Of a stretch of 64,000 nucleotides of DNA, positions 4,071 through 61,269 are shown in pieces. Position 1 is the stretch's first letter. Every line of letters begins with the position of its first letter. Position numbers and translations under genes: made by a program. Below the pieces are notes generated by a model. That model did no database searches. It saw only the letters and a program-made list of their open reading frames with translations, and was not told where the DNA came from. The stretch comes from Macrostomum lignano (lineage: Eukaryota), in contig NIVC01002793.1 in NCBI GenBank assembly GCA_002269645.1, positions 75,976 through 139,975 on the forward strand, given 5' to 3'.

Positions 4071-4595
4071 AAACCAACTGAGTGAATGAGGAACCAACTG
4101 AGTGAATTGGGAACCAACTGAGTGAATTGGGAACCAACTGAGTGAATTGGGAACCAACTGAGTGAATTGGGAACCAACTGAGTGAATTGGGAACCAACTG
4201 AGTGAATTGGGAACCAACTGAGTGAATTGGGAACCAACTGAGTGAATTGGGAACCAACTGAGTGAATTGGGAACCAACTGAGTGAATTGGGAACCAACTG
4301 AGTGAATTGGGAACCAACTGAGTAAATTGGGAACCAACTGAGTGAAAGGTGAACCAACTGAGTGAATTGGGAACCAACTGAGTGAATTGGGAACCAACTG
4401 AGTGAATTGGGAACCAACTGAGTGAAAGGTGAACCAACTGAGTGAATTGGGAACCAACTGAGTGAAAGGTGAACCATCTGAGTGAATTGGGAACCAACTG
4501 AGTGAATTGGGAACCAACTGAGTGAAAGGTGAACCATCTGAGTGAATTGGGAACCAACTGAGTGAATTGGGAACCAACTGAGTGAATTGGGAACT
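4071..4595. repeat. 20-bp minisatellite GAACCAACTGAGTGAATTGG (variant ...GAAAGGT), about 26 copies
   Basis: Same unit, variant and orientation as the 20-mer blocks at 1341-2190. Confidence 0.95.
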
Positions 4596-7469
4596 AAATG
4601 AGCAGCCAATTGACTGTAGAAACGATAAATTTTGGAAAATGTTTTTAATAGTAAAAATCCAAGTGCCATATGATGAGAAATAGATTGAATGCAGAGTACG
4701 GAGCCAGGTGTAGCCCAGAGACAAAGGGATTGATTCAATTTACATGATTTATAATTTAAATAAGCTGAGACCATTGACATAAAATAGAATCAATATACTA
4801 ATTTAATTAACTAATCAGTTAGCTTACTGCTCTCACATAATTATTGTCAAAGATGAAGTGTTTTGCGGGAGGTGACACTCTACGAAGATTCCCACACTGC
4901 AAAGAGTATATCAGTTATGAACATAATGATTAAACTGTGTTTCCAATGCAAAACACAATAAACTCTCACCAGAACTGATCTTCCAGCCTCGTCTACATGA
5001 GCAACTCCCTGATTACAACGGCTGTGCGATTTACTTTTTGATAAAAAATGTGACTTACCTATGAGAGAAACCTAAGCAAAAGTTTAAGTAATTTTGGGCA
5101 AACGGCAGGAGTAACTAAGAATATATTATTAAGGCTAAATACCTCGTCATCCAATTAGCACTACGGCCATATTTTTTCAGTGGCATTTTTGCAACTTACC
5201 TCGGCTAGGCCAGGTGTGGCGCACATATGTTTAAGGAGGAACTTACCAGGACAAGCAGCCTGTGGGTCAACTTCCTGGTTCAGAGAAATTCATTCACCTA
5301 CTAATTAAGAGAGTCACCTTAAGATTAAGAAGAAAAGTCCTAATGAAAAAATGATTTCTAGAGAATATTAGTCTTAGAACTAGAAAAAGTTGAAGGGATT
5401 AAAATTTTTCATATTAGGCAAGATGAGGATGCAAACTTTTGCAGGGATCCAAGGATTTCTGTGTTATGGGAATGGGGTTGAAATTTTTATGTAACATGTA
5501 ATATATTGAATAAGCAATATAGAGATGGGATAGAAGAAAAATTCATGAAACTCATAAAACAAAACCTTAATGTCTATTGCAGACTCAAATGAGAATACTA
5601 TTTCAAATTGAATCTTTCACTTACATTAGTATCCTTTCTTAACTGTCACAGATTGAAAACATCATATTAGTGCCACCTGTGGAAGAGAATGTGTTGGCAA
5701 AACATTTAATAAACCTAGCCTAATATTCAAGAGCTAAACTTGAACTAAAAGTTTTTAAATAGTTTATAAGGACAAACAAAGAGCATATAATTTTAGTTGA
5801 CTATAGAGTTTTAAGACCAAAAGCCATGACTTTTGACTTGATAAAAGTTGAATTTCATAACAAAGTAGAAAACTTCTTGATTATAGGCTAAAATATATAT
5901 TTAAAACTAGGGATTGACTGACTGTGATTTTTGTGCATGATTGGAACTAGACCATGCATGACTGTGAATTTTTATAACATACACTTTAATTTAAACACAG
6001 AACTATTAGTATTAATACTACCAAGTCTAGTAATTTTTATTGATTTTTAAGCTTTGTTTTATCATGTTTACTTCTTGACTATATTTTATTATGTGACTTT
6101 GTTACATCTGCACTGATTTGTTGCAATTTTGGTTTGCTTTTCACAATTGTATATTTCAGTATGTTGTGCTATGACTTAGAAAAGTAAATTTTAAGTCATA
6201 AAATTCATGAACTGTGATTATGGTTGATCTAGTTCAAACTAATTATAGTTACTAAAAATTTATAGCACTTATAGTCATAAAAATGATTGTTTTGTAGTAC
6301 CTAGCTATGTTTGAAAAGAAAGTGCTTTTTCTCTTGATGATATATTATTGCTAACATTAATTTGTACCCAGGAAATTTCTTTTTTTGATAGCTCTTTTTT
6401 TCTCCCTAAAAACCCACAATGCTATGATTATGATAGGTCTTTTGCCTATTCTGAGAGCATAAGTATATGTCTAGCCACATCTCAGTGTATTATTGGCCTA
6501 AGCAGTGTACTATGTATAAGTAGTACAAATGTATTACATTCATTTTTTGCTAGACTTAGGCATTATCTCCCATCTTACAGTCCTATCTTCTGTCTTAAGG
6601 ATCAGGAATACATATAAAAGAGTACATATAGTAGAAGTACATGCTAACAGCAAGTGCCATGACCCTCTAATCTTAGTAATGCCCAGATTAGAGAAGTAGT
6701 AAATATACCAATAAGACCACTTAGGCTACTAAGAATGCTACTACAATGCTACCAGAACACTACTAGAATGCTACTTAGACTCATACAAAGAAAGGATAGA
6801 ATATAGCAATGGGATTATTAAAAGAGAAGTTTAGCACCAGTACAACTTTGGTGGCCTTAAGGAGATTAAATTAAAGGCCTGCAGCTGTGAAAGATAGGGG
6901 AAAAAGACCTATTACAATATATAATATATTTAAATATTCTTGGAATCATTTTACTTTATATCTAATATTTTAATTTCTTTTTAAAGGCCTAATAATTACC
7001 TTTGAACTATTATTTTAAGCTAGGTCTAAGCTACCTAACAAAAATATTAGGCCTAACTTTAGCCTTTAGAAAAAAAACATATATATTTTTAAATTTTATT
7101 TGTCAACTTTATTATTTCACATAATTTTAATAATATATTATATTAATTTTTTGGTGTTTAATAATAATATTAATGGTTTCAATCCACTTTGGCAAAATAA
7201 TTTTTGGCAAAAGTCAATAATAGCAAAAAAAATACTTTTATAGCAACTAGCTATTTTGGCAAACAATTTGTTGAGATTGATCTAAGCTTCAGCAAAGAGC
7301 AAAGTCTTACTGTTTTAGAAAAAAAGTCAGAATAAAAAAGACAAACTCTAAAGACTATTTTTGCTATCCATTTTTATTCTATGGCGATTTTATTATTAGG
7401 TACTGTTCCTATGTGATCCATTATAGAGGGATTTCAAAGTACAATTTAGGAACTAGAACTTTGAATAAC

Positions 7470-12510: not shown

Positions 12511-13094
12511 TCTTTAGCTTTAGTATATCTTTGCATAATATAAAAGTATATTATATCATGCAAAGCAAATAAAATAATGTCTTTATACTTTAATGAATGT
12601 TTGTTTTTTTATTACTTAAAATTAAAACTTTGACAAAATCTGTTATCTTCTTTATAGGCTAGTAGGTTAGCTTAGTTATCACTACATAGAAGCAATTTTT
12701 TTATTTAGTCAAGATGCTAAATTATTTAATCATAAGTTTATAGAAATAATGAAATTAGAACAAATTTTTAAGGTTTAATAAATGTTTAAATAAGTTTCTT
12801 TGGAATCTTTTGCCATAATAATAGGATTGCAATATACTTGTAAAATAGGTTTTTATTTAAATATAGTTACCAATTAATAATCAAAATGCTAATTTTTTTA
12901 CTAGTAAAAATATATTATTTATACTTAAAATCTATGTATTCATCAAAATGAAGCACTTTGACCTAATTTCCTTTTAAGAACAATAGACAGAAGTTTTTTT
13001 GATACTATAGCCATAGGCATTGGTATGACCTATGCAAGATTACGGTAGAGAAGCACTCTTAACAGATAATAGTAAGACAAAACTCAATATTACT

Positions 13095-13132
13095 TGCGAC
13101 GCGTTTCGGCCAAAACTAGCCATCCTCAGGCA
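13095..13132 (-). ncRNA. Minimal type I hammerhead ribozyme
   Basis: Minus strand TGC-CTGAGGA-T-GGCT agtttt GGCC-GAAA-CGCGTC-GCA: CUGANGA and GAAA core, 4-bp stem II with a G-U wobble, palindromic ACGCGU stem III, GUC cleavage triplet, 3-bp stem I. Confidence 0.75.
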
Positions 13133-13249
13133 CTATCGAACAGAATTACAGATCTGTACATTGATCCTTTAGTCCTTTTATATCTTTTCAATACCTGATT
13201 TTGTCGTCTACACAGTATTTAATAGGTTGAAATAAATTCTGTTCGATAG

Positions 13250-13287
13250 TGCCTGAAGATGGCTAGTTCCAGCCGAAACGCGTCGCA
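13250..13287 (+). ncRNA. Minimal type I hammerhead ribozyme
   Basis: TGC-CTGAAGA(13253-13259)-T-GGCT agttcc AGCC-GAAA(13275-13278)-CGCGTC-GCA; predicted cleavage after C13284. Confidence 0.78.
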
Positions 13288-13872
13288 AACAATATTGAGT
13301 TTTGTCTTACTATGCAAGATTAGGTCTAGAATTATTTTATATAGTATATAGCTATCAATTTGCCTTTTTGGCTTTGCTTTATAGGTAATAATTTAAGGTC
13401 TTATTAATAGTGTATAAAATATATTAAAATTTGTTGAAAAATTGCAATAAATTCCCAAAAGTTATTGCAACTAAGAATGCTTTTTTGTATATACTTATAT
13501 GCCCAATACCCAGCCAGCCAGGTGGCAAGAGGTGTTGCCAAGTTAAGTGCAAAAATTTCAACTTAAAAATTGGACAAAGAGGAAGGGGATCTTAGCACGA
13601 GGGTGCTGCTTTTCTGATGCATTATGAAGTTGACCTACTTTTTCATGGAGCTGAACATCATTATACTGCTGAATTGCTAGAAAAGCTGCAACATGTAAGT
13701 ATAATTAAGTATGAATTCTATGAATAGTCTTTAGCTTTGGTCTTTCAAATAACATTACTGTTCTTTTCTGCTAAGGCTGCGTAACGGGAGCAGATGCAAT
13801 AATATTCCTTGCGAATAACAAAGCCATTTTTTAACATTATGATGTACCTTTGGGAATGTCTTAAGTCTAGTA

Positions 13873-18651: not shown

Positions 18652-19944
18652 CGAGGGGCACTATTAAAGTTCTGAGCCTGACCAAGATCTTATAGTGGCA
18701 AAGTGTTGAAACTTTAGGCTCTAAAAGCGCCACATGTTAATAGTCTATTGTCAACTTTTCAGAATTTTCTGCATTCCCTAAGTCCCACTGCACCATTTTA
18801 TTTCCAGCACCCCATGGCATTTTCTCAAGAATTGAAGCTTGAGCACAGGGCAGTGATTAAATTTCTGACTCTGGAGGGCTCAAAGCCTGCTGAAATTCAA
18901 AGCCGCATGGCTAGTGTGTACGCTGACGCTGCCCCCTCATACGCCACCATAAAGCGCTGGGCAGCCAAGTTCAAGCGTGGCCGCGACTCGCTCGAAGATA
19001 ACCCCCGATGTGGACGACCCCGGACTGCTGTCACTGCCGACAACATCCAGCGCATCCAGGCTCTGGTTGACAGTGACCAGCGGGTGAAAGTCAGGGAACT
19101 TGCGGCAGACACTGGACTCTCTGACCCGCAAGTCATTGAGATCCTGCACCAGCATCTTCATCTGTCCAAGGTTTCTGCCAGATGGATCCCACGAATCTTG
19201 ACAAGGGACCAAAAGACCGCACGGGTGCAGTACTCAAAGCTTGTCCTGGACTCCTACGATCCGGACCCTGCCAACTTTCTGTCCTGCTGCGTGACCGGGG
19301 ATGAGACGTGGATCCATCACCACGATCCCGAGTCCAAGCAGGAGTCCAAGCAGTGGCTGCCAGTTGGTTCACCTGCACCACTGAAGGCACGGACTGCATG
19401 CAGTGCGGGCAAGATTATGCTCACCGTCTTCTGGGATGCCAAGGGCCCGCTGCTGCTGGACTTTCTACCGCACAAGCAGACAGTCACAGGCGCCTACTAC
19501 ACTGACCTGATCGCCCGTCTGCGCGAAGCAATCAAGGAAAATAGGCGAGGGATGCTGAGCCAAGGTGTTGTGCTGCTGCACGACAATGCACCGGCCCACA
19601 CTAGCAGGATTGCCAAGGCTGCTGTCAGTGTCGCAGGGTTTCGAGAGCTGCCGCACCCAGCCTATTCACCAGACCTAGCCCCGAGCGACTTCCACCTGTT
19701 TCCACATCTCAAGCGGGCGCTCCGTGGACAGCGATTTGACACTGATGATGCGCTGAAGGATGCTGCAACTGCTTGGTTTGAGGGCTGCTCGGTGCAATTC
19801 TTCCAGAGTGGCATTGAGGCGCTGCGATCAAGATGCCATAAGTGCATCTTGGTTGGGGGAGACTATGTTGAGAAAAGCTGATCTCACTTTGCCCATATCT
19901 CCTCTCTTTCATATTAAGGCTCAGAACTTTAATAGTGCCCCTCG
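18652..19944 (+). mobile_element. Full-length mariner transposon (1293 bp), irritans/Hsmar2-like
   Basis: Perfect 28-bp TIRs CGAGGGGCACTATTAAAGTTCTGAGCCT; TA TSD at 18650-18651 and 19945-19946. Confidence 0.95.
18814..19881 (+). CDS. Intact DD34D mariner transposase, 355 aa
   Basis: First ATG 18814 (MAFSQELKLEHRAVIKF); motifs GRPRT, SARWIPRIL, TGDETW, LLHDNAPAH, YSPDLAPSDFHLF; 34 residues between the second and third Asp (counted). Confidence 0.95.
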   Translation: MAFSQELKLEHRAVIKFLTLEGSKPAEIQSRMASVYADAAPSYATIKRWAAKFKRGRDSLEDNPRCGRPRTAVTADNIQRIQALVDSDQRVKVRELAADTGLSDPQVIEILHQHLHLSKVSARWIPRILTRDQKTARVQYSKLVLDSYDPDPANFLSCCVTGDETWIHHHDPESKQESKQWLPVGSPAPLKARTACSAGKIMLTVFWDAKGPLLLDFLPHKQTVTGAYYTDLIARLREAIKENRRGMLSQGVVLLHDNAPAHTSRIAKAAVSVAGFRELPHPAYSPDLAPSDFHLFPHLKRALRGQRFDTDDALKDAATAWFEGCSVQFFQSGIEALRSRCHKCILVGGDYVEKS

Positions 19945-28022: not shown

Positions 28023-44016
<15,994 letters not shown>

Positions 44017-45189: not shown

Positions 45190-47401
45190 TGTAGTTGAAA
45201 GTTAAGTGCCAGGTGTGCACAGTTTCTTTATTTATATTTTAGTCACCTTAGAAAAACTACACGATCGGTATATTAAAGAGCCAGAGATATCACGTGATCA
45301 ATAATACATTATCCAGATTATTTATCAACTACTCTACTGAAAGTAGCAGTATAAGTAAAAGACAAGAATAATATTAGTATAGTTAGCATTTACGTTGTAC
45401 CATAATTATACGAGCTAGTAGAAACATCAGCGTAACAATATTATCATCAAGTTGACCCTTTAAGTTACGACACAACATCTTACTCCTATCCAATTGAAAT
45501 CACCAGCCGTAGCGCTGCAGAGGACGTCGCGGACGAGTGGACCGTCGCAGAGCCCGAGCCGGTGGTCCATCGGCTGGACCAGGAGTCGGTGTTCGAGCCT
45601 TTCCTCCTCCGTCTTGCGTTGCCCACTCTTGGACATCCACGAGAGGATCAAACTCGCCAGCCGCAGATGCCTTGTAGTTTAGTCGCAGAGATGTCGGCAC
45701 CAGCGCTTGCTGGTTCCAGGTGCTGCCGTCCGCCAGTCGACAGGCCGCCTTGACGATCTGCAGCGGCGCAGAGAGCCGGCTGCCGAGCTTGCCAGGTCGT
45801 GTTGGCCGGCGGATCCGGACCCAGTCACCGGTGCGTAATGTCGGCTGCCGGGCTCCACGCCGTTGGTCGGTGTACGCTGAAGTCCGCTGTTGACGCTGCT
45901 GAATACGTTCGGCGATATCAGACTGCGCAGCAGTGCCCTTCTTGACCGGAGCGAGTAGAGACATGGGCGTGCGCCAACGGCGACCCAACATCAGTTCGGC
46001 CGGGCTCTTGACAGTCAGGGCGTGCGGCGTGCTGCGGTAGCTCTCGAGAAACTGCAACAGCGCGTCCTGCATCGGCACGTTGACGGCTCTAGACGCTCGA
46101 ATGCTGTCCATCAGGGACCGTTTGAGCCGCTTGGTTTGACCGTTGGTGCTCGGACCGTACAGACAAGTCTTTAGGTGTTGGATGCCCCGCTCTTGAAGGA
46201 ACCCGGTAAAGGCGTCGCCGAACTGAGGTCCGTTGTCGGCAAGGACCTTCTCGCAGAGGCCCCAGCGTGCGAACAGGTTGCGTAGCACCTTACAGACCGT
46301 GTCGGTGGTGATGCTTGAAGTCGCGAAGACCTCCAGCCCCTTGCTGTGCAGATCCGTGATGACCAGTAGGAATCGTGACGACGCCGGCGCTGCCTGCAGT
46401 TCACCCACGATGTCGATGGCGATCTCTGTCTAGTGGCACTGGCAGGGGCTGCAGCGGAGCCGATCGCAGCTTGAAATTTTTCTCCACAGTCTCGCAGGCG
46501 CCGCAGTCTCTGACGAACGTCTCGACGTCGGCGTCCATCCTCGGCCACAAGGTGAACTCGCGAAGCTGCTGCTTGGTACGCACCGCCCTCGGATGTCCCG
46601 CATGCGCGGACTTCAGAAGCTCACGCCGCAGGTCCTGTGGGATGACGGCGCGGTCTTGGAAGGCCAGACAGGAGCCGTCTTGCCAGGTGCTAAAATGCTC
46701 TCGGACTTTTAAGTACGGCTGCAACTCCGTGTCCTTGGCCAAACTCCAGTTGCCGGTGGGAACTCGCTGAATGACTTCGCGCAGGATCGTGTCCTCTGCT
46801 TTGGCCGTCGCTAGCCGCTGTGGCGTGACGATTCGGAGTCGAGGCATTGCGGTGTCTGGCAATTGGATGATGTTCATGTCGGACCCGCAGCTCCACCTGG
46901 ACAGCATGTCGGCCACCAAGTTGCGACTCCCCGGGAGGTAGCGCGCATGAAATTCGTACTGCTGAAATCGGTCACACATCGGTGAATGCGCAGCAGATTG
47001 CCGCTTTAAGCGCCTGGAAGGCTCGCTCGCATTCAGCTGTCCATTTGAACTCGGCATCGCCCTTGAGCAGAGGCCTCAGCGGCGTTGTGACCTCGGCAAA
47101 GTGGGGCACGAACCGCATCAGATAGTTTGCCGATCCAAGGAACGCCTGCAGCTCCTTGCTCGTCGGCGCGCGCAGCTCATTGAAAGCCTTGGTTTGAGAC
47201 TCGGACGGCCGGATGCCCTCCGCCGAGAAGACAAAGCCGAAGAACTCTAATCTCGGTCTGCCGTAGCTCGCACTTGTCCTTGTTGGCGGTGAGGCCGGCG
47301 TCCTCCAGTCGCTTCAGCAGAGCTCACAGCATCGAGTCATATTCGGCCTCAGTTGCTCCGAAGACATCCAGTCAGTTGACCCATCAAGTTACGACACAAC
47401 A
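45190..47401 (-). mobile_element. Internally deleted, degenerate Gypsy/Ty3 LTR retrotransposon (RT and RNase H remnant, integrase)
   Basis: Minus-strand RT end (LKRLEDAGLTANKDKC), NLVADMLSR, HHCC finger (GHPRAVRTK...CGAC), IAIDIVG, VLADNGPQF; catalytic Glu replaced (NGQTKRL). LTR start TGTTGTGTCGTAACTT at 47401 and 45477, the latter preceded by a purine tract GGATAGGAGTAAGA. The distal LTR boundary (about 45190) is approximate. Confidence 0.85.
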
Positions 47402-48061: not shown

Positions 48062-51000
48062 ATGGCAAGTTGGGGTGAGTGTGCTTGTAGCATTCATATA
48101 ATAATGGGCCGTTGTTACGGTCGAAAAGTAGTTTAAACCAAACAAAATAATTGGTCATTTTTAGCGCCCTGGAAATTCTTCGTAGTCCTGGTTGCCACTC
48201 AGGTGTGCTTGGGCAGCGGTGAAGTTAGCAGTAAGTTACACGTGAATATTTTTAAACGTCACAATCTTTAGCTTATTTTTTGTGACAGAAGGCACTGTAG
48301 CTGTAGGCTTTACTATAAGACTTCTTTATTATGGCAAACAGTTTTAAGACACAATAATACGTGTGCATGCACTTGTTCTTGAGTTGATTGCCACATTGTT
48401 ATCATAGATATAGCGTCATTGTTAGCAAAACCCTGGAACCGTAGTGTTACAAACGCATCAAGGTACAAACAATCTAGTAAAAATTCAACTAACTTAACTC
48501 GAGAAGGTACGAGAGAGGCATGAGAAAGAGTCCGCCGAGATTTTCCTGCAGGAGATTTGCCAGTCAGCTCTGAATATCTACATGTAAGGGTTGTTACAGA
48601 GTGTTGCTCATGCAGGAGCGTCATCTACCCAGATAGTATTCCGTGTTTGAACGTGGCATCCATGAATATGTTGTTATACAAGTGTATTGTTGCGCTGCTG
48701 GCGCAAAATCTATCAAGTTGTTCTCACTTTTTGTTTCAGATTGTCCAATATTTCAACTTCTAAATGTTAGCACTCATGGTGCCATTGAAAGCCACTCGAA
48801 CACTGATGATTACCTGAGCAGTTTGGCCTGCACCTGGCAGATCAACGCTCCTAGAGGCAAGAAAATTGCGGCCTGGTTCGATTTTGTTCATCTCAGTCCA
48901 GGAAATTATTCGTCCGTGACCGTAATCGACGGAGAGAAAGGGTCGCGAGCGATTGGCAGAGTCGATGGGCGTGACGGTCGACACTTCTTGTCGCCAAAGT
49001 ACATCTCTACTGGAAACGTTTTGTTAATCTATTTTCAAAATCCTGAAAGTAAATTTAATAGCGGTTTTCGACTTCACTACGAGGTTTCGGAAAGCTGTAA
49101 GTTTGCTAACTTGGTTTGATCTGTTAGAGATCACCGGACAAAAGCTATTGGTCAAAACCTCTGGAAAAATGCTGTTAGAGCCTTGGGTTTGCTCATCTCC
49201 ACTAAATTCCGCTCCTCCTGTGGATAGACAGCCTGTCCTGAAAAATCCTAACTGCTGATGTTTTTAGTGTATTGGGCGGAAGGGGATATGACTGGGTCAA
49301 AAATACTCTGTAGTACAGTTACTGCTTGCACCAATATTTATGGAGGGGTTTGCAGGATCTCCGAGGCTCTGGTGTCAGTCGCAGCAGTCTACTCCAAGAG
49401 GCAAGCGGACTGCTCGAACTTTTGCACAATCTCGGAAAACAGTGGCGAAATCGCGAGCCACTCCAACGGCTGCAGCCGCCAGCGCTACGGCAATAATTTG
49501 GTGTGCAGCTGGCGGATAGCTGTAGCCCGGGGCAAGAGGGTGATGGCCTGGTTTGCTTACGTCGACCTAGAAGAAGCTTTTGACTGGGTCGCCCTGCTGG
49601 ACGGTGACGGCGACAGTAAGTCAGGGCTGGTCGTGAAAGTCAGCAAATCTGCAGCTGCCAGATTCCAGTCGCCGATTTACGTTTCAACCGGTAGCAAAAT
49701 GCTGGTAAAGTTCAAATCCGACTCCAGCGTTTCAGGGTATGGATTCCGGATGCACTTCAAAACTACCGAGAGTAGTGAGTACAATTAAAAAATTTTAATC
49801 GAGAAAATATGCTTGTCTCTTGACGCTAGTTCAATAGACCCTGGAAAGACGGGACAGGCGGTTCCAAAAATATTGATAAGCTATTTGACTGATTGACACA
49901 AGCAGGTTTTCATAGCTCTGTTTGCTTTTTAATCAAACAGCAAGGCAATTCTTGGTGCTCTTTGTTTATTTTTATCAGCTTCAAACGGCTCGTGCCTGGA
50001 AAAGTCGTGGCTGGATGCAGGGCAGACAAGTGGCGTGATCTACAGCCACGGCCAAGTGGACACCGCTCCTTATTCACCCAATATGAGCTGCTCCTGGACT
50101 CTACCAGTAGTTTCGGATAGGTATATTCACCTGCTCGTGTTTAATCTGTCGATCGGATCGGGTGATGTGCTGAGTATGTACGGCCGCTGGAATGGAAGTT
50201 CATACAAGAGTTTAGACTTTCCCGGTTGGACTGCAAAGCGCGTACTTCAACTGTTCTCAACTGAGACGGTTAAAATTGACTTCAAGTCCGATGGCCTATT
50301 GGAGTCTACTGGTTTCGTCATACACTACCGATACGATGAGTGTAAGCGACTGCAAGGTCAAACTTGAGCCTTTGAATTTTGTTATTCTCTGAGTACCCTG
50401 CTGACTTGTCCTGAATCAAATTGACAGACTGTACCAGCAACAAGAGACTGACAGCTCCCAGTGGCCAAATTGAAGTTCATAGTGGAATCGGTTTCATTAA
50501 GCATGATTCAAGACGCCATCATCAAGACTGCAGGTGGACCATTGACCAGGCTGAAGGCAACCGCATCGCTATTCAGTTTGCAGAAATCAGTGTAGCCCCA
50601 TGGTATTTTTTCATAAAAGTACTGAATGCGTCAGGACATCAAGTGCTTTATCTGGACAATTCATCCAACTTGACTGATAATTTGCATCGGAAAATCCATA
50701 TAAATTCGAACCTAGTTGTCGTTGAATTCGTTTCTAACGACACTGATAGCACAGAAGCTGGCTTTAGACTTCTTTATAAAACGTCTGATCACTGTAAGAA
50801 GTCATTAAATTTCTTTTGTTTGTGTTGTTAAACATCGTAAAATAATGCACAGATTCTATTTCGCTTCTGTTTCAGTTTGCCACAACTTTCAAAATTTAAC
50901 TGTTAAAATGATGGCGAAATTGAAAGCCACGCAGGTGCTGGAGCTACACGTCACCGACACAATACGACATGCACGTGGCAGATCAACGCCCCAGTAGGCA

Positions 51001-54000
51001 AGAGAATCGCAGCCTGGTTTGTTTACGTAGACCTCGAGAAAACCTACGATACGGTCACTTTTTTCGACGGGAAAAACGGGTCTTTAAAGATTGCCAAAGT
51101 TAGCAGGCCTGCTTACACAAACTACAGCTGCGTGTCCCCGAAGTACATCTCCAGCGGCAATGTTTTATCAATGTTCTTCTCCACTGATGTATCCGTGGCT
51201 AATACAGGATTTCGAATCCGATACGAGGTCATAGAAAGTCGTTAGTATTTTTTATTTCTTACGCTGTATAATGTAAAATGCCTATCATCACAAGCAAAAA
51301 ATTCAAGAATCCCTACCCTCAGGGATGGTTTAGCTTTCTTGCCTTAAGTGTTAATGTCAATAATTATAATGATGCCTACTAATGCCAAATTTTAGCGGCA
51401 AGCAAATCCTGCGGATGCGTAATCTTCAACGACTCAACGAATCGAACCGGATCGATAACTAGTCACGCCTCCTTTGGAAAAACTCCCTATTCATCAAATA
51501 TGTCGTGCGAGTGGATTTTGCCCGCCGTGAAGGGGCACTTCATCGAGGTGACTCTGAGGAACATGTCTCTTGGCGGTGGCGACTGCTTTTCGTTTAGCGA
51601 CTACCAACGAGTCTGCGACTGGTATTGGCTCTGTAATCCATATGCTTACTGGGCTAGCAACGCAAGCACTCTACTACACATAAAGTTCCAGTCCGATATG
51701 CAGTTCGAATCGAATGGATTTCTGATAGAGTTTCAGTACACATCGGGTAAGTGGTGCGTTGTTGAATGTATGAACATTTTGCACCAGCAGACGTTGAAAC
51801 GAGCGTATTTCCTCTTGGCCATAAATTTATTTCTCCTCTCGTGAATAAGATATAGAACGTTAAAAACTAAAGCACCTCACATTTTTATTAGACCCCTAAA
51901 ACTCCTTCACCTCTTTCCAAATCTTTCAACGTAAAGACTTACTTAATTTTTCCTGATAAATTTGCCCTACAGTGTGCACTGCACTACAGTCGCAAACTTA
52001 AAAGCCAAAATAATTCAAGTTGAAGCCGAACTTGAGTAATTCTAATGAGTTTGCTCAATAAGAATCGATGCTCGTACCTGAAGGTACATTTTAAGAACAA
52101 CATGTTAGCCAATTAAATTAACATTAACTTGTAATTTTAACTACAGAATAGTACAGGAAGCCATAGTCTCTTTTAAAGTCTTAGCCAATACGAAAGCGGT
52201 TTAAACAAAACCAATTAATAGAAAGCGAGAGACTGACTACCCCTAATGGCACAATCGCGAGCCACTCGGGACACCGGATGGCGGCTGGCTACTGGATGAA
52301 CATGCAGCGCAGCTGGCAGATTGTGGCACCGCTGGGCAGACAGATTTCTGCTTGGTTCACCAATTCATTCGTCAGCCTCGGCTCGATTAACGACACCGTC
52401 GTTCTGTACGACGGTTGGCGAAATCAACTGGCGCTGCTGAGAGGCGGATTCTCACCTGAAGCGATTAATTCGGCGAACAGAATTTTCAGGACGAGCTCGA
52501 ATCGGATGCGGATCAGCTTTACCTCCGGGAATTTGCAGCATCCTCTCCATGCGCTAGGATTTGAGCTGGAGTACACTTGGTCCGAGAGCTGTGAGTCATT
52601 GGAAGTGGCTACTCGCATACGTAAAGACTATTGTTATTGTTGGATAGCTATAATTTTTGTGTGTTCAACCCGAGTAAAGTCCCTCAGCAACAAATGAAAA
52701 TATTGGATATGCTGAAACATTGTACGTATCCTGAACTCATTCCAGTCTGCCATGGATTCAAGCTGGTAACAGAAAGCAATGGCGAGTTGGTCAGCCACAG
52801 CGGTGCGGGTCGGTCGCGCTGCCTGAGCAACATGCGCTGCAGGTGGCAGATTTTGGCCCCACAGGGAACTCGAATTCAGGCCAGATTCAGTTTCTTGAGC
52901 GTGGAGTCTGACTCCGATTCGTTAGTAATACATGACAATTACCCTTCTCAGCTGATATTCAGGTCGAGTCGCGGAAACAATGCCCCCGACTGGACTGTAG
53001 AGTCAAGTTCAAACTTCATGTTCGTGTCCTATCTCACTGGGAGTAGCTTTGGCGCCAGCCACACCTCTTCGCTGGGCTTCCGACTGAAGTACCAATATCA
53101 GGACGCTGGGGATCGTGAGTTCAAACGCTGAAGTGTACTAAAAATTCAACCATAGCCACATCAACTGCAGTTGGCAGCAAGCAGACGTTCAAAGATTGCA
53201 TTACGAGCATCTAGCTTACATGTACTTTTCCCTTTGCCCTGTACAAAGTAAACTGACTGAAATAACTGCCACTTGTGGATACACCCATAAGTATTTTTCA
53301 ATTTCGTCTAAAAGACACATGGTTGATTTTTAATGCCGTAGATATACGAGAGTATTGTTTGTTTTTTTCAGGGGTTATTGTAGAACAATATATCAAAACT
53401 GTAGGCGTTCAACAAGACGATGACAGGTGCAAATAATTGTTCTAAAAATTCAAATCCCAGACTGCAGCGGAGTACGCATAATTAGGAATGAGTCGAAAGG
53501 AGAGATCTGCAGCCACACAAATGCCGGCAGAGAAATCTACGCGATACAGGCAAACTGCGAGTGGCAGGTTGTGGCGCCTAAAGGTCACAGGGTCGTTGTG
53601 CGATTCACCTACATGGGCGTGAGCGAGAAAGACCTGCTAGCGTATGTTAGAGTAAGCGATGGGAGCTATGCATCCAAAGTGCTGGCTTTCATTGGCGGAG
53701 CAGCTCCTAATAGTACTAAAAATATCACCTCCACCGATTTGGTTTCATCTGGCAACTTGCTGCAATTGGAATTCAGGGCCAGAGCACATTCAAATACGCT
53801 GGGTTTCCGATTGAGGTTCGACACGACACGATGTTGTGAGTTGGAATGCCTTTTTACCTGATGTTTATTACACTGCTTTATTCTCTGAGTACACATCATG
53901 GACACGCAAAAAGTAGATATGTACTAACTATACGCCCGACGCATTTCAGTTTGCCAGCGCTACCAGGTACTGCATTGTAACAGTGGTGAGATCTTCAGCC

Positions 54001-55350
54001 ACAGTGAAGTTGGGGTCAGGCCCTATCTGGACAACATGCTCTGTGAATGGCTGCTAGTTGCCAAAACTCGAGGCTATAAATTATGCGCTCAGATCTCTTA
54101 CGCTAGCCTGCAGTCCGCTAACGACACTGTGACGCTGCTGCACGGAAATAATGGCACGCTGATAACTGCTGTGAAAGGTGGGACCGCGTCGGCAGGGCAT
54201 CACAGACCGACGATATTTTGCGCAACATCCGGCACTATGGCTGTGATTTTCTCTACCGACGGCTCCGGAAGGGCGTTAGGATTTCGACTCCGATACGAAG
54301 CCTTTGCCCAATGGGATTCGCGTAAGTCTAATTGTTATATGGTCACTGTGGCTGTAGCTCTGCGAGTGACCGTTTTTGAAATAATAAAACAGATAGCATA
54401 TTGATCGAACAAATGAAGTTACATTTTAATCCACAATAAAAAGCGAAAATAAACTATTATTCTCCTTTCTTTGAAAAACAACTTATCAATATTTCTAGAC
54501 CATACAAAACAAAAGAATGGCTTCGCACCGTACAATATCTTCATAAGCTTCGACATACACATTTCCAGCATCATTGGATCGTTTCACAACGCGGGAATAC
54601 AGTGCGGATCCGATTACTACATCTTCTCTGGCAGTGAGGAGTACGATTGCAAGTGAGACTGAAAGTACAAGAGTCAATGAATTTCCAAATGGAAGTGCGA
54701 GTACAAGTTGGAGTACAACAATTGCGAATACAACTCCAAAAAACATTTCTGTTTCTCCATTGGCTAAACAGAGTGGTAATTATTATTTATCATGTAGCTT
54801 TCATGATAAAAAGTGTGTCAAGTCGTACAGTGGTATAGCCTTAAAGTTTAATACCGTTTTGCAGTCGACGCGAACGAATCGTCTGCCCTAAAAATTTCGC
54901 TGAGCACTTTGTCGGCCATTTTTCTCGTCGTTTCGGCTGCTATTGTGGCGGTGGTGATATATAAGGTACGTAAAGGTTTGCCAAACCGTATTTTAAACAA
55001 AAACACGTTGCTTTACTGGCGAAACTTCTCAGAGCGGAACCCTCTAACTTGATTCACTTCAGCGCAAATTTGGATTGAATATCAGACGAAACCCCTTCAT
55101 CAGCCGTTTCACTTCTGGTTCCAGACGTTTGGACGAGGTGAGGCAGACCTTGAGAAGTTACTTGATATCCCATAAGAGTTCAACCACACAAAATTTAGTA
55201 TCTGCGGTAGCCACTGTCGAGTTTTGCCGCCGAACTCTACTTTCATAACAGATCTGTTTGTTGGTCAAATAAATTCAAATTAATATACTCAAATTTATTG
55301 TCCAGAGATCAGGAAACAGAGACTATCAGCATTCATTCCGACCGATATGA
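48062..55350 (+). CDS. Type I membrane protein: signal peptide, 10 tandem CUB domains, Ser/Thr-rich stalk, TM helix, short tail; one apparent 1-nt frameshift in CUB5
   Basis: Exons: 48062-48074 and 48165-48218 (MASWAPWKFFVVLVATQVCLGS); CUB exons 48740-49096, about 49388-49774, 49979-50341, 50428-50793, 50876-51240, 51396-51746, about 52222-52590, 52746-53114, 53461-53835, 53950-54321 (all phase 1-1); stalk about 54569-54775; TM 54865-54965 (LSTLSAIFLVVSAAIVAVVIYK); tail 55063-55137 and 55306-55350 (terminal exon tentative). Confidence 0.8.
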
Positions 55351-55494
55351 CCTGCAGCAACTGTCGGTCTATCTCAGTTTTCACGTTACAAGCATTGTTT
55401 CCTCTGAAAAAAATCATAAAACTAAAATGCTATTAGCGAAAAAGTGACCCGAATATGGTTTAAAGGTATATTTAAACGTAAATTTAGATATTTA

Positions 55495-57237
55495 CCGTGT
55501 GCGCAAAAGGTATCCGGACAAAATCTTGTTGGCTTTGCTTTCCGAGAGTTTGACATACTCCGGGAATTTAAAGCATCATTTGTATAATATGTCTATGGCC
55601 CAACTTCTGCCTGGAATTTTAACCCTGATATGCAAAATGGACTCATGCTGTTCATCCTTTTATTTCGAAAGCTTCGTTTTCAATCCGCGATTTGCCATCC
55701 CAAGTTGTCACAAAATGGCAAGCTATTCCTTGGATCTCAAGAAGCGTGTCGCTACCGACTTGACTTCTGGAATGAGCGTGCGAATGTGTGCTGAGAAGTA
55801 CTCAGTAGGGAAGAGCACCGTCGGTGATTGGAAGAAGCTGCTGGATTCTGGCGACAGCCTGGAACCGAAGGAGAAATCGGGACGGCCGCGGACAGTCCGG
55901 ACACCAGACTTCATGGCCAACCTCGAAGCCAAGCGGGCAGAAGACCCAACGAAGACGATGAGGCAAATTGCCCGAGAGGAAGGAGTGCATGAGAGCAATG
56001 TCCGCAATGCATTTCGGGAGATGGGCGTCAGGAGCTTCGTGCAGAGGGAGATCCCCATGCTGAACGCGGATCAGCTGGGGCTTCGGGTTCAACGGTCACG
56101 GAGGCTCCTGAATGACCTCAAGGCCTCTCCCGGAGTTGAAGTCATCTTCTTCACGGATGAAAAGAACTTCACGCAGACACCCTACCGGAATCGCAGCTCT
56201 TCGCGCGTGCTGGCCAGGAGCAGTGAGGAGCGGGACGCCTTCAACTCGCCACAGATTAAGCACCCGGCAACCATCATGGTCTTCGGCCTCGTCGCTTCTG
56301 ATGGCAAGAAAATGCAGCCAATATTTTTTGACAAGGGTACCGACTGAATGGAGACGGGTACCTTGATGTGCTCCAGAAAGTGCTGCACTGGATTCGCAGT
56401 AACTATCCTGACAGGGTGCGGCCGGATGGCAGTTTTGCAGATGGCTGGAACTTTCGCTTCCAGCAGGACTCTGCTCCAGCACACACTCGCAATGACGTGC
56501 AGGCCTGGCTCAGCGCTCACTTCGGGCGCAAGCGCGTCTGGCTGAAGGAGGACTGGCCAGCCTACTCACCGGATCTAAATCCCCTGGATTTTTCGATCTG
56601 GAACCAGGTTGACAAGCGGGCCTGCAGAAGCTTCCACACGTCCCTGGACTCGCTGAGATCTGCCATTCATGAGGCTTGGGAATCAGAGCTGACTCCGGAA
56701 TATCTGGTGAGATGCTGCAAAGCGTTTCGTGGTCGTCTTGAGAAGGTGATTGCCCAAGGAGGTTCTCCAATCGTGGATTAAATCGAGTCTGGCATGCAGA
56801 GCCGCTTGTTGGAACCATTTGAGCAGCACATTTCAGCAAGTGGGCCAGGTGATTGATTCGAGGAAGTCTGACGATCTTGAACTCTGTTAGAAAAAGCGAC
56901 CGCTTCTTTAAATTAAGTTTCACTTTTGTTGCTCAATGCCCGCGTTACGTTTCTCTTGTTCGCATTTTAGAAAAAAATCGTTTTTACGTTGTTAAATCGA
57001 ACACGAGCTTGAAATTTCGCGATTTACGTCATCTACCTTTAATTAAGCCATTATCACCTTTCCAGGTGAAAATAGACCGACCTGTTGCATTGGCCACTTT
57101 GCTGAAAAACGAGCTACGACAATTTGTTGCATTAAATTGCGATGTGAAAATTCATTGATTTTGGGTACAACACGTGCATATTTATCTGTCCTTCTCTGCA
57201 ACACATGCAAGTGTCCGGATACTTTTTGCGTACCCGG
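55495..57237 (+). mobile_element. maT/Bmmar1-like Tc1/mariner transposon, 1743 bp
   Basis: 26-bp TIRs CCG(T/G)GT(G/A)CGCAAAA(G/A)GTATCCGGACA with 3 mismatches; TA TSD at 55493-55494 and 57238-57239. Confidence 0.9.
55715..56781 (+). pseudogene. maT-like DDD transposase split by a single 1-nt frameshift at about 56340
   Basis: MASYSLDLKKRVA...SGRPRTVRT...FFTDEKNF...HPATIMVFGLV...KG/RLNGDGYLDVLQK...FQQDSAPAH...EDWPAYSPDLNPLDFSIW; adding one C at GGTACCGA joins the two ORF-track frames. Confidence 0.85.
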
Positions 57238-59994: not shown

Positions 59995-61269
59995 ATGACT
60001 TTGAGCTACACTAGTACCGAGTCATCGCTGGAACAACTGCCTCCAGTCAATAACCAGCTATCTACGTTCGAGAAAATGCACAGTCACCACGGGAACTCTG
60101 AAATCTATCAGGCCTGGCGCTATGCCCAGTGCAGCCTCCTCATTATAGTGGGCCTTCTGGGCATCGTTCTGAACTCGGTCGTGGTGGCAGCCATACTTCT
60201 ATCGCGACGCTTGCGCAGGACCAGCAACGCATTCCAGCTGCACCAGTGCCTGCTGGACCTGCTCAGGTCTGCCTACTGCATCGTGTTCGCCAACAGCATC
60301 CTGGCTAACCGGGAGCCACCGTTCTGCAACCTACTCGGCGGCTCATTTATCCTGTGCGCCACCAGCTCAGCTTTCAACCTGCTTGCCATGGTGATGAGCG
60401 AGTCCTACGCCTTCACCGACCTGACCACTGGGCTGGGGGACAGCGGCAATTGCTGCTGCGTACTGTTTGGCATCGGCACCGTCTGGTTTGCCAGCTTCAT
60501 TCTTAACCTTGGCGTGGCCTTGCTGCCGGGCAATCCCAGCTACATGGAGCAGATCGGGCACTGCACCTTTCGCTACGGAGAGATGCGCAACTATGTGCTG
60601 CACGCACTCTGGGTGTTTGTAGTCACAGCCGGTTTGATCCTGACCGCCATGTACCTCAGGCGGCTGCACTCGGACATTGTAAACAGTCGGTTGCGCAACG
60701 ACAGCGAGTTAAGGCAGACAGCACGTCGACTAGCAGGCGGCGACGTCAGCACAGAGTCGGATCTGCTGTACAGGGTCGAGAGGTACGCCATCAGCCGCAT
60801 GTACAGCCTGCTGGCGCTCACTGCAGTGTTCGTGCTGCTCTGGTACCCGCTGTTCGCGCTGACCCTCGTTGACGCCGACTACAAAAGCCAGCCAGCGGCG
60901 TACAAGGCGCTCACAATGCTGGCTTGTCTTGGCTGCGCGGCCGACCCGCTGCTGTTGGCCTGCCTGTGTCGGGCCCAGCCACCCGCCGCGTTTGTAGCAA
61001 GGACTGCCGTTGTCATGGCAACGAAGACTGATAGAAAAATGCCAGCGCATCGCGGCAAGCCGGGGCGGCAGAGGCCGCTGATCGGAGGTTTCTGCTGCCT
61101 GTCGATGCCGCAGCTGCCAGCGCCGATGCCCCCGACTGACATATTTCAGCGTCATTCGGAAGCATGCCTCGATCAGCCGTCAGCAGTGGATGCCGCATGC
61201 AGTGCTGGGACTCTGCCGCCACCTCAACCTCCCCAGTCGTCTTCTTGGTCTCCGCCGAGTCGCCTATAA
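59995..61269 (+). CDS. Intronless class A (rhodopsin-like) orphan GPCR, 424 aa from the first ATG
   Basis: Seven hydrophobic segments: TM1 GIVLN, TM2 LLDLL, Cys at the start of TM3, TM4 Trp, TM6 LWYP, TM7 DPLLL; the DRY position reads ESY. The ORF-track start 59917 is a TTG codon. Confidence 0.88.
   Translation: MTLSYTSTESSLEQLPPVNNQLSTFEKMHSHHGNSEIYQAWRYAQCSLLIIVGLLGIVLNSVVVAAILLSRRLRRTSNAFQLHQCLLDLLRSAYCIVFANSILANREPPFCNLLGGSFILCATSSAFNLLAMVMSESYAFTDLTTGLGDSGNCCCVLFGIGTVWFASFILNLGVALLPGNPSYMEQIGHCTFRYGEMRNYVLHALWVFVVTAGLILTAMYLRRLHSDIVNSRLRNDSELRQTARRLAGGDVSTESDLLYRVERYAISRMYSLLALTAVFVLLWYPLFALTLVDADYKSQPAAYKALTMLACLGCAADPLLLACLCRAQPPAAFVARTAVVMATKTDRKMPAHRGKPGRQRPLIGGFCCLSMPQLPAPMPPTDIFQRHSEACLDQPSAVDAACSAGTLPPPQPPQSSSWSPPSRL

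Follow-up and report, generated by a model that had tools for sequence, protein, structure and literature searches.

A probable dead-on-arrival Penelope-like element stub with two opposed minimal hammerhead ribozymes in a flatworm genome

The sequence at positions 13030–13322 of the window (the whole 64,000-nucleotide stretch analysed here) is probably a dead-on-arrival, extremely 5′-truncated insertion of a Penelope-like element (PLE) in a flatworm genome, a reading to which we assign a probability of about 0.8. Two inverted, outward-facing arms, each with the core of a minimal type I hammerhead ribozyme, lie between the copies of a 13-bp target-site duplication (TSD), and a short tail separates one arm, and not the other, from its TSD copy. 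This anatomy is observed directly, as is its recurrence in PLE-linked loci elsewhere. Extreme truncation of a PLE insertion that carries inverted copies was one of the possibilities raised in an earlier note on this DNA, and it is now favoured by the hallmarks of the ribozymes, by the architecture of the insertion and by analogous loci linked to reverse transcriptase (RT) or GIY-YIG sequences.

The unit spans 293 bp. It opens with an exact 13-bp repeat, CTATGCAAGATTA, at 13030–13042, followed by a 26-nt tail at 13043–13068 and by the left arm, a 79-nt inverted repeat on the minus strand at 13069–13147. The tail stands on the 3′ side of the left copy (minus strand), and alignment found no counterpart of it past the right arm. 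A non-palindromic centre of 87 nt (13148–13234), without inverted similarity outside the arms, leads to the right arm on the plus strand (13235–13313), whose last 4 nt (CTAT) are common with the second exact copy of CTATGCAAGATTA at 13310–13322. The unit is thus asymmetric: the left arm is set off from the repeat by 26 nt, and the right arm overlaps the repeat by 4 nt. Counting the ambiguous CTAT, the tail measures 30 nt instead of 26 nt. The two arms, which we read as copies of a PLE 3′ terminus, are identical at 73 of 79 positions (92% complementary). A perfect 10-nt palindrome, ACAGATCTGT, occupies 13148–13157, abutting the left arm on its inner side. Both inverted 79-nt arms, and the complete hammerhead core that the earlier note had described in each, were matched base by base. 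The same note had spoken of a 270-bp insertion; a TSD-bracketed insert is indeed present, but its size is 267 bp, and the 26 nt between the left repeat and its arm had been overlooked.

The flanking 13-bp direct repeat, also reported earlier, proved exact. Across the 64 kb, CTATGCAAGATTA occurs at 13030–13042 and 13310–13322 and nowhere else, even when one mismatch is allowed. The duplication is perfect and ends in ATTA, in a neighbourhood with a GC content of 34%. When control flank pairings from other loci were compared, direct repeats of at least 13 nt appeared in 0.3% of comparisons. No second copy of the arm, of the element or of its flanks was found within the 64-kb window.

Each arm carries a minimal type I hammerhead, at 13098–13129 on the minus strand (CUGAGGA-U-GGCU(A)..GGCC-GAAA-CGCG-UC) and at 13253–13284 on the plus strand (CUGAAGA-U-GGCU..AGCC-GAAA-CGCG-UC). 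The pattern CTGANGA..GAAACGCGTC was found at these two places only in the window, with 0 expected from shuffles. A relaxed descriptor of the minimal hammerhead returned the same two sites only; with stems II and I held to minimum lengths of 4 bp and 3 bp, respectively, block shuffles yield 0.005 matches per window. The core is complete in both arms, comprising C3 U4 G5 A6 N7 G8 A9, G12 A13 A14, the A15.1-U16.1 pair and H17. An unpaired U stands between A9 and G10.1 in both, and a G10.1-C11.1 pair forms the base of helix II. This helix is GGCU/AGCC in the right arm (4 pairs) and GGCU/GGCC in the left arm (up to 5 pairs). Helix I consists of three contiguous pairs (UGC/GCA), beyond which an internal loop leads to a distal helix of 7 bp (UUCGAUA/UAUUGAG). 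Of helix III only A15.1-U16.1 and C15.2-G16.2 are left, closing a 2-nt loop. The strand concerned, ACGCGU, is a 6-nt palindrome, so helix III could form only between two ribozyme copies. Cleavage is predicted after C13284 on the plus strand and after the C complementary to G13098 on the minus strand, which places the cut sites 55 nt (left) and 25 nt (right) from the TSD. Thermodynamic folds of the arms as monomers and dimers did not recover the hammerhead; such folds are uninformative for this motif.

These features agree with the hammerheads of published PLEs. Hallmarks of the minimal hammerheads in PLE pseudo-LTRs are a nucleotide added between A9 and G10.1, pairing of G10.1 with C11.1 and a palindromic 15.2-16.2/loop 3 segment (Cervera & de la Peña 2014, PMC4209133). 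The arms share the CUGANGA and GAAA boxes, the extra nucleotide and the G10.1-C11.1 pair with that class, as well as the near-absent helix III, the palindromic ACGCGU and the occurrence of opposite-strand pairs in a flatworm genome (PMC4209133). The assignment made in the earlier note, a PLE-type minimal hammerhead with a palindromic stem III, is therefore upheld, as the published hallmarks are all present. In Schistosoma mansoni, dual minimal hammerheads on opposite strands, 100–700 bp apart, were attributed to truncated PLEs in 2014 (PMC4209133). The helices differ in length from the published ones: helix II has 4–5 bp in the window versus 7–8 bp in the main S. mansoni families, and contiguous helix I has 3 bp, with its additional distal helix, versus 4–5 bp in the published consensus (PMC4209133).

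The arms differ at six positions: N7, two positions in loop II, a stem II pair changed from A-U to G-U and, in stem I, two positions of the internal loop. The earlier note had placed all six at tolerated positions. The locations stand, but they carry little weight as a sign of selection. They are transitions without exception and fall into three clusters (1+3+2); six random changes would spare the core and the stems with a probability of 0.07–0.13 if only transitions are drawn, or 0.02–0.07 if any substitution is allowed. Because random transitions spare core and stems in 7–13% of cases, the tolerated differences are not evidence for selection on this copy.

A search with the Rfam hammerhead models (RF00163, RF00008 and related ones), proposed earlier as a check, gave no match in the window, either at the gathering threshold or at E ≤ 10. 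The same models, used as a control, also miss the PLE-linked or tandem minimal hammerheads in three metagenome loci described below (L082, L037 and L018). Since PLE-linked controls are missed too, the failure to match the arms is uninformative, and the proposed check is left without weight. This minimal hammerhead class lies outside the Rfam models.

The architecture of the unit was compared with that of known PLE insertions, which show strong 5′ truncation, often an adjacent inverted and 5′-truncated copy, and a tail of 30–40 bp at one end (Craig et al. 2021, PMC8557442). The 5′ truncation, the inverted partner, the tail at one end and the TSD are all found in the window. Compared with published insertions, truncation here is extreme, leaving 267 bp in total and no coding sequence. 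The tail of 26 nt (30 nt with CTAT) is at or slightly under the published range of 30–40 bp (PMC8557442).

Biochemical work on a PLE protein offers a framework for such structures. The purified Poseidon_Ac protein cleaves and extends both target strands in vitro, and its RT initiates at two neighbouring positions within the RNA, the tail being the sequence between them (Frangieh et al. 2024, PMC11167929). The ribozyme of this element depends on the element's protein, and insertion in vitro can do without the ribozyme (PMC11167929). Its open reading frame (ORF) starts at an AUG formed by hammerhead A9-U-G10.1 (PMC11167929, File S1). The window resembles Poseidon_Ac in two respects, an AUG formed from A9-U-G10.1 (13259–13261 in the right copy) and insertion ends that lie tens of nucleotides past the cut. 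These ends fall 25–29 nt and 55 nt after the cut in the window versus about 82–89 nt in Poseidon_Ac, as calculated here. The frame that begins at the ribozyme AUG is open to the ends of the arms, for 18 and 27 codons; with the chance of meeting no stop estimated at about 0.1–0.2, this is a weak lead only for a PLE N-terminus.

From these comparisons we infer an order of events for the insertion. A PLE endonuclease would have nicked the two strands 13 bp apart at CTATGCAAGATTA, and both nicked 3′ ends would have primed reverse transcription of a PLE RNA at neighbouring internal sites that lie 25–29 nt and 55 nt past the hammerhead cut. On the top strand, the 3′ end (...GATTA) would have primed a minus-sense copy at the distal start site, and on the bottom strand the 3′ end (...CATAG) a plus-sense copy at the proximal one, possibly by way of a 4-nt CUAU microhomology; the CTAT overlap of the right arm and the TSD may be the trace of such priming. 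Both cDNAs would have stopped after about 80–170 nt and been joined head to head. The 87-nt centre would derive from the longer of them; under two cDNAs it is most likely extra 5′ sequence of one copy. The outcome would be two outward-facing copies of the pseudo-LTR/ORF junction with its minimal hammerhead, a 26-nt tail and a 13-bp TSD. Joining the flanks gives a candidate pre-insertion site, ...GGTATGAC-CTATGCAAGATTA-GGTCTAGAA..., which would hold the 13-mer once.

A related scheme, reportedly put forward for LINE-1 by Ostertag and Kazazian in 2001 as twin priming, is said to let both nicked strands prime cDNA from one and the same RNA, so that the insertion is inverted, truncated and flanked by a TSD. 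In LINE-1 the second primer anneals internally and an inversion results, whereas the PLE cDNAs both start near the 3′ end and yield outward-facing terminal repeats. Snap-back of a single cDNA accounts less well for a tail on one side only, and no inversion is seen in the flanks.

Parentage of the unit is assigned by analogy, because the window contains neither PLE coding sequence nor a second copy of the arm. No RVT_1 or GIY-YIG domain was detected by Pfam among the 110 ORFs of at least 90 aa in the window, and tblastn of the Poseidon_Ac protein against the window gave no match. Absence of PLE coding sequence is expected of a stub of only 267 bp.

To place the unit among related sequences, metagenome contigs were scanned with a pattern derived from the window, CTGANGATGGC-N(4-12)-GCCGAAACGCGTC, and at least 120 loci were recovered. 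Because the pattern was derived from the window, the match of the core in these loci is circular; evidence independent of the pattern comes only from stem covariation, from linkage to RT or endonuclease (EN) sequences and from insertion architecture. The loci belong to other animals and have the ribozyme design in common with the window, but not the flanking sequence. Many bear animal genes or transposons, for example Mos1 HTH or Cep192 domains, and many come from samples named as insect gut, which we presume to represent host DNA. The same motif scan of viral contigs returned no match. A single match came from a bacterial genome, at 2702–2730 of L121 (JAVBJR010000484.1, a Dysgonomonas sp. metagenome-assembled genome, MAG), and this hammerhead is probably host-DNA contamination of the MAG bin.

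Two pairs of stem II, the first ones that the pattern leaves open, covary among the matches listed (G-C/A-U and U-A/C-G). Among the same matches these positions are paired in 81% and 76% of cases, versus 6% and 54% with a shifted partner. Helix I shows five paired positions in most of the listed loci (ACUCC/GGAGU), and a few families use other helices. Linkage to PLE enzymes was found in three loci. L007 matches the Poseidon_Ac RT with E=5e-24, L037 matches it more weakly, and in L082 a GIY-YIG ORF (27 bits in Pfam, over the cut-off) lies upstream of the hammerhead. A 692-aa ORF adjoining the motif in L060 had no Pfam domain and was hence dropped as PLE evidence.

The insertion architecture recurs as well. 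Neighbouring hammerheads within 600 bp form 32 outward, 6 inward and 13 same-strand pairs among the matches listed. Flanking direct repeats of at least 10 nt accompany 7 of 28 outward pairs among these matches, versus 3% in mismatched controls. Where distances from cut to TSD were measured, they came to 61 and 95 nt in L035, 58 and 98 nt in L057, and 64 and 94 nt in L085, which corresponds to one-sided tails of 30–40 nt.

The extra nucleotide after A9 is U in every PLE-type hammerhead inspected, so that A9-U-G10.1 reads AUG throughout; this U is fixed by the pattern in the pattern-fetched set and is not fixed in a second family (L007, L035, L056 and L085). In the insect-like hammerhead copies the frame opened by this AUG closes after 8–16 codons.

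The two ribozymes of the window were carried in with the parent element and do not form a device of the locus itself, which probably does nothing now, a lack of function that we infer from its anatomy. Self-cleavage of the predicted ribozymes is unlikely in this context. Each transcript would contain one sense and one antisense copy, whose arms would pair as a 79-bp hairpin, and the palindromic helix III (ACGCGU) would require a second sense copy. PLE minimal hammerheads are, moreover, weak in vitro and cleave poorly even as dimers (PMC4209133). Putative cleavage and small-RNA production at the locus are conjecture.

The most serious competitor to a truncated insertion, though in our view a rather improbable one, is a non-autonomous foldback, or "mini-PLE", that is copied whole, with outward 3′ modules at both ends and the PLE enzyme acting in trans. 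Several metagenome inverted pairs indeed have their entire interior in common at different flanks. L104 matches L114 at 81% identity across the full core, the flanks being dissimilar, and L114/L115, L105/L115, L056/L108 and L001/L100 likewise have their interior in common between unrelated flanks. Some of these pairs have similar spacings: 62–74 nt in L104 (2968–3103), L114 (4616–4757), L115 (1338–1467) and L105 (2787–2897), and about 290 nt in L001 (10625–10982) and L100 (2156–2512). Such common interiors suggest either a preferred junction point or a foldback copied as a unit. Non-autonomous hammerhead elements derived from PLEs, the tandem retrozymes, are also known (Cervera & de la Peña 2020, PMC7229834; Li et al. 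2026 preprint, bioRxiv 10.64898/2026.07.22.740005). However, the window's element is visible there as a single copy, and the spacing of paired hammerheads ranges from 40 to 539 nt across the listed loci, as random truncation predicts. The common interiors could also stem from a preferred template-switch point, and two independent priming events account for the one-sided tail more simply. It is a long shot that outward hammerhead foldbacks are non-autonomous elements of this kind, offering a valid PLE 3′ end on either strand and being remobilised whole. Hairpins of such elements might feed small-RNA pathways.

A retrozyme in the strict sense is excluded. Animal non-LTR retrozymes are head-to-tail tandem repeats of 150–450 bp with their ribozymes on one strand, an arrangement that permits excision and circularisation (PMC7229834). 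The window resembles them in its small non-coding unit, its type I hammerheads and its kinship to PLE pseudo-LTRs; unlike them, it has its two ribozymes on opposite strands and no tandem array at the locus. A tandem array was seen among the metagenome loci, where L018 (1449–1844) contains 4.5 copies of an 87-nt unit (96% matches) with a minimal hammerhead per unit, reaching the contig end. This array is retrozyme-like, but its unit is far shorter than the 150–450 bp of animal retrozymes.

Co-option of the unit by the host, either as a hairpin-RNA gene for miRNA or siRNA or as a ribozyme that actively cleaves itself within host transcripts, is improbable. The hairpin predicted for the whole unit is very stable (−134.5 kcal/mol, z = −15), and it gave sub-threshold matches to plant miRNA-precursor models, MIR8562 at 47.3 bits versus a gathering threshold of 211 and MIR393 at 26.3 versus 60. 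Generic miRNA matches of this kind recur on inverted pairs in unrelated loci, however, so they reflect hairpin shape only. Further arguing against co-option, the region is AT-rich and rich in transposable elements, with no gene evidence nearby, and the divergence pattern of the arms is compatible with neutral decay.

Still less credible is a MITE or other foldback DNA transposon whose terminal inverted repeats (TIRs) happen to contain hammerhead-like motifs. Inverted arms and a flanking direct repeat would fit such an element, but its left arm is not terminal, lying 26 nt from the repeat, which by itself makes a MITE unlikely. The arms moreover hold a full ribozyme core that is PLE-linked elsewhere, and PLE-type loci show the one-sided tail again. 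The common cut-and-paste superfamilies leave duplications shorter than 13 bp. Finally, the idea that an ordinary inverted repeat resembles a hammerhead by chance, in line with the absence of an Rfam match, can be practically dismissed given that 0.005 descriptor matches are expected per window, that at least 120 loci show the design, with covariation in their stems, and that PLE-linked controls are likewise missed by Rfam.

Other parts of the window contain several unrelated features. An uninterrupted ORF of 377 aa at 18748–19881 (plus strand) encodes a mariner/Mos1-type transposase with Transposase_1, DDE_3 and HTH_48 domains; its closest database relative, 92% identical, lies on a 1.3-kb ENA contig, and this mariner may have been active recently. 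Ty3/gypsy-type integrase remnants (rve, Integrase_H2C2) are split across adjacent ORFs at 45436–47313 on the minus strand. Minisatellite arrays with 20- and 23-nt units (GAACCAACTGAGTGAATTGG, GGGATCCTGGGATTTGAGATGCC and AATTTGGTCCAACAAGCATC) occupy 1290–2592, 4072–4602 and 38407–39357, show higher-order periods of 271–331 nt and adjoin an island of 60% GC at 2–4 kb. Ten CUB-domain ORF pieces stand in series at about 48600–57200 on the plus strand and probably belong to one large multi-CUB gene. An intronless rhodopsin-family GPCR is encoded at 59995–61266 (plus strand). Its best relatives are flatworm proteins with 50–53% identity, from Macrostomum lignano (50%), Protopolystoma and Cichlidogyrus. 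The GPCR, the CUB domains, the mariner and the integrase mark the window as animal DNA, and the relatives of the GPCR place it in Platyhelminthes, with a flatworm as the probable source. Look-ups of identical proteins for the mariner ORF (two start choices) and for the GPCR gave no match.

The PLE stub described here is of an already known kind, the opposite-strand pairs of minimal hammerheads reported from S. mansoni in 2014, and the window adds a further flatworm example. Its main value lies in annotation: PLE stubs resemble MITEs or miRNA hairpins to generic tools, and no Rfam model recognises them. Together with its relatives in other animals, the unit agrees with the picture of PLE integration obtained in vitro in 2024, in which both strands are primed, reverse transcription has two internal starts and a one-sided tail results. 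The finding thus gives comparative support to that picture of PLE integration and introduces no new principle.
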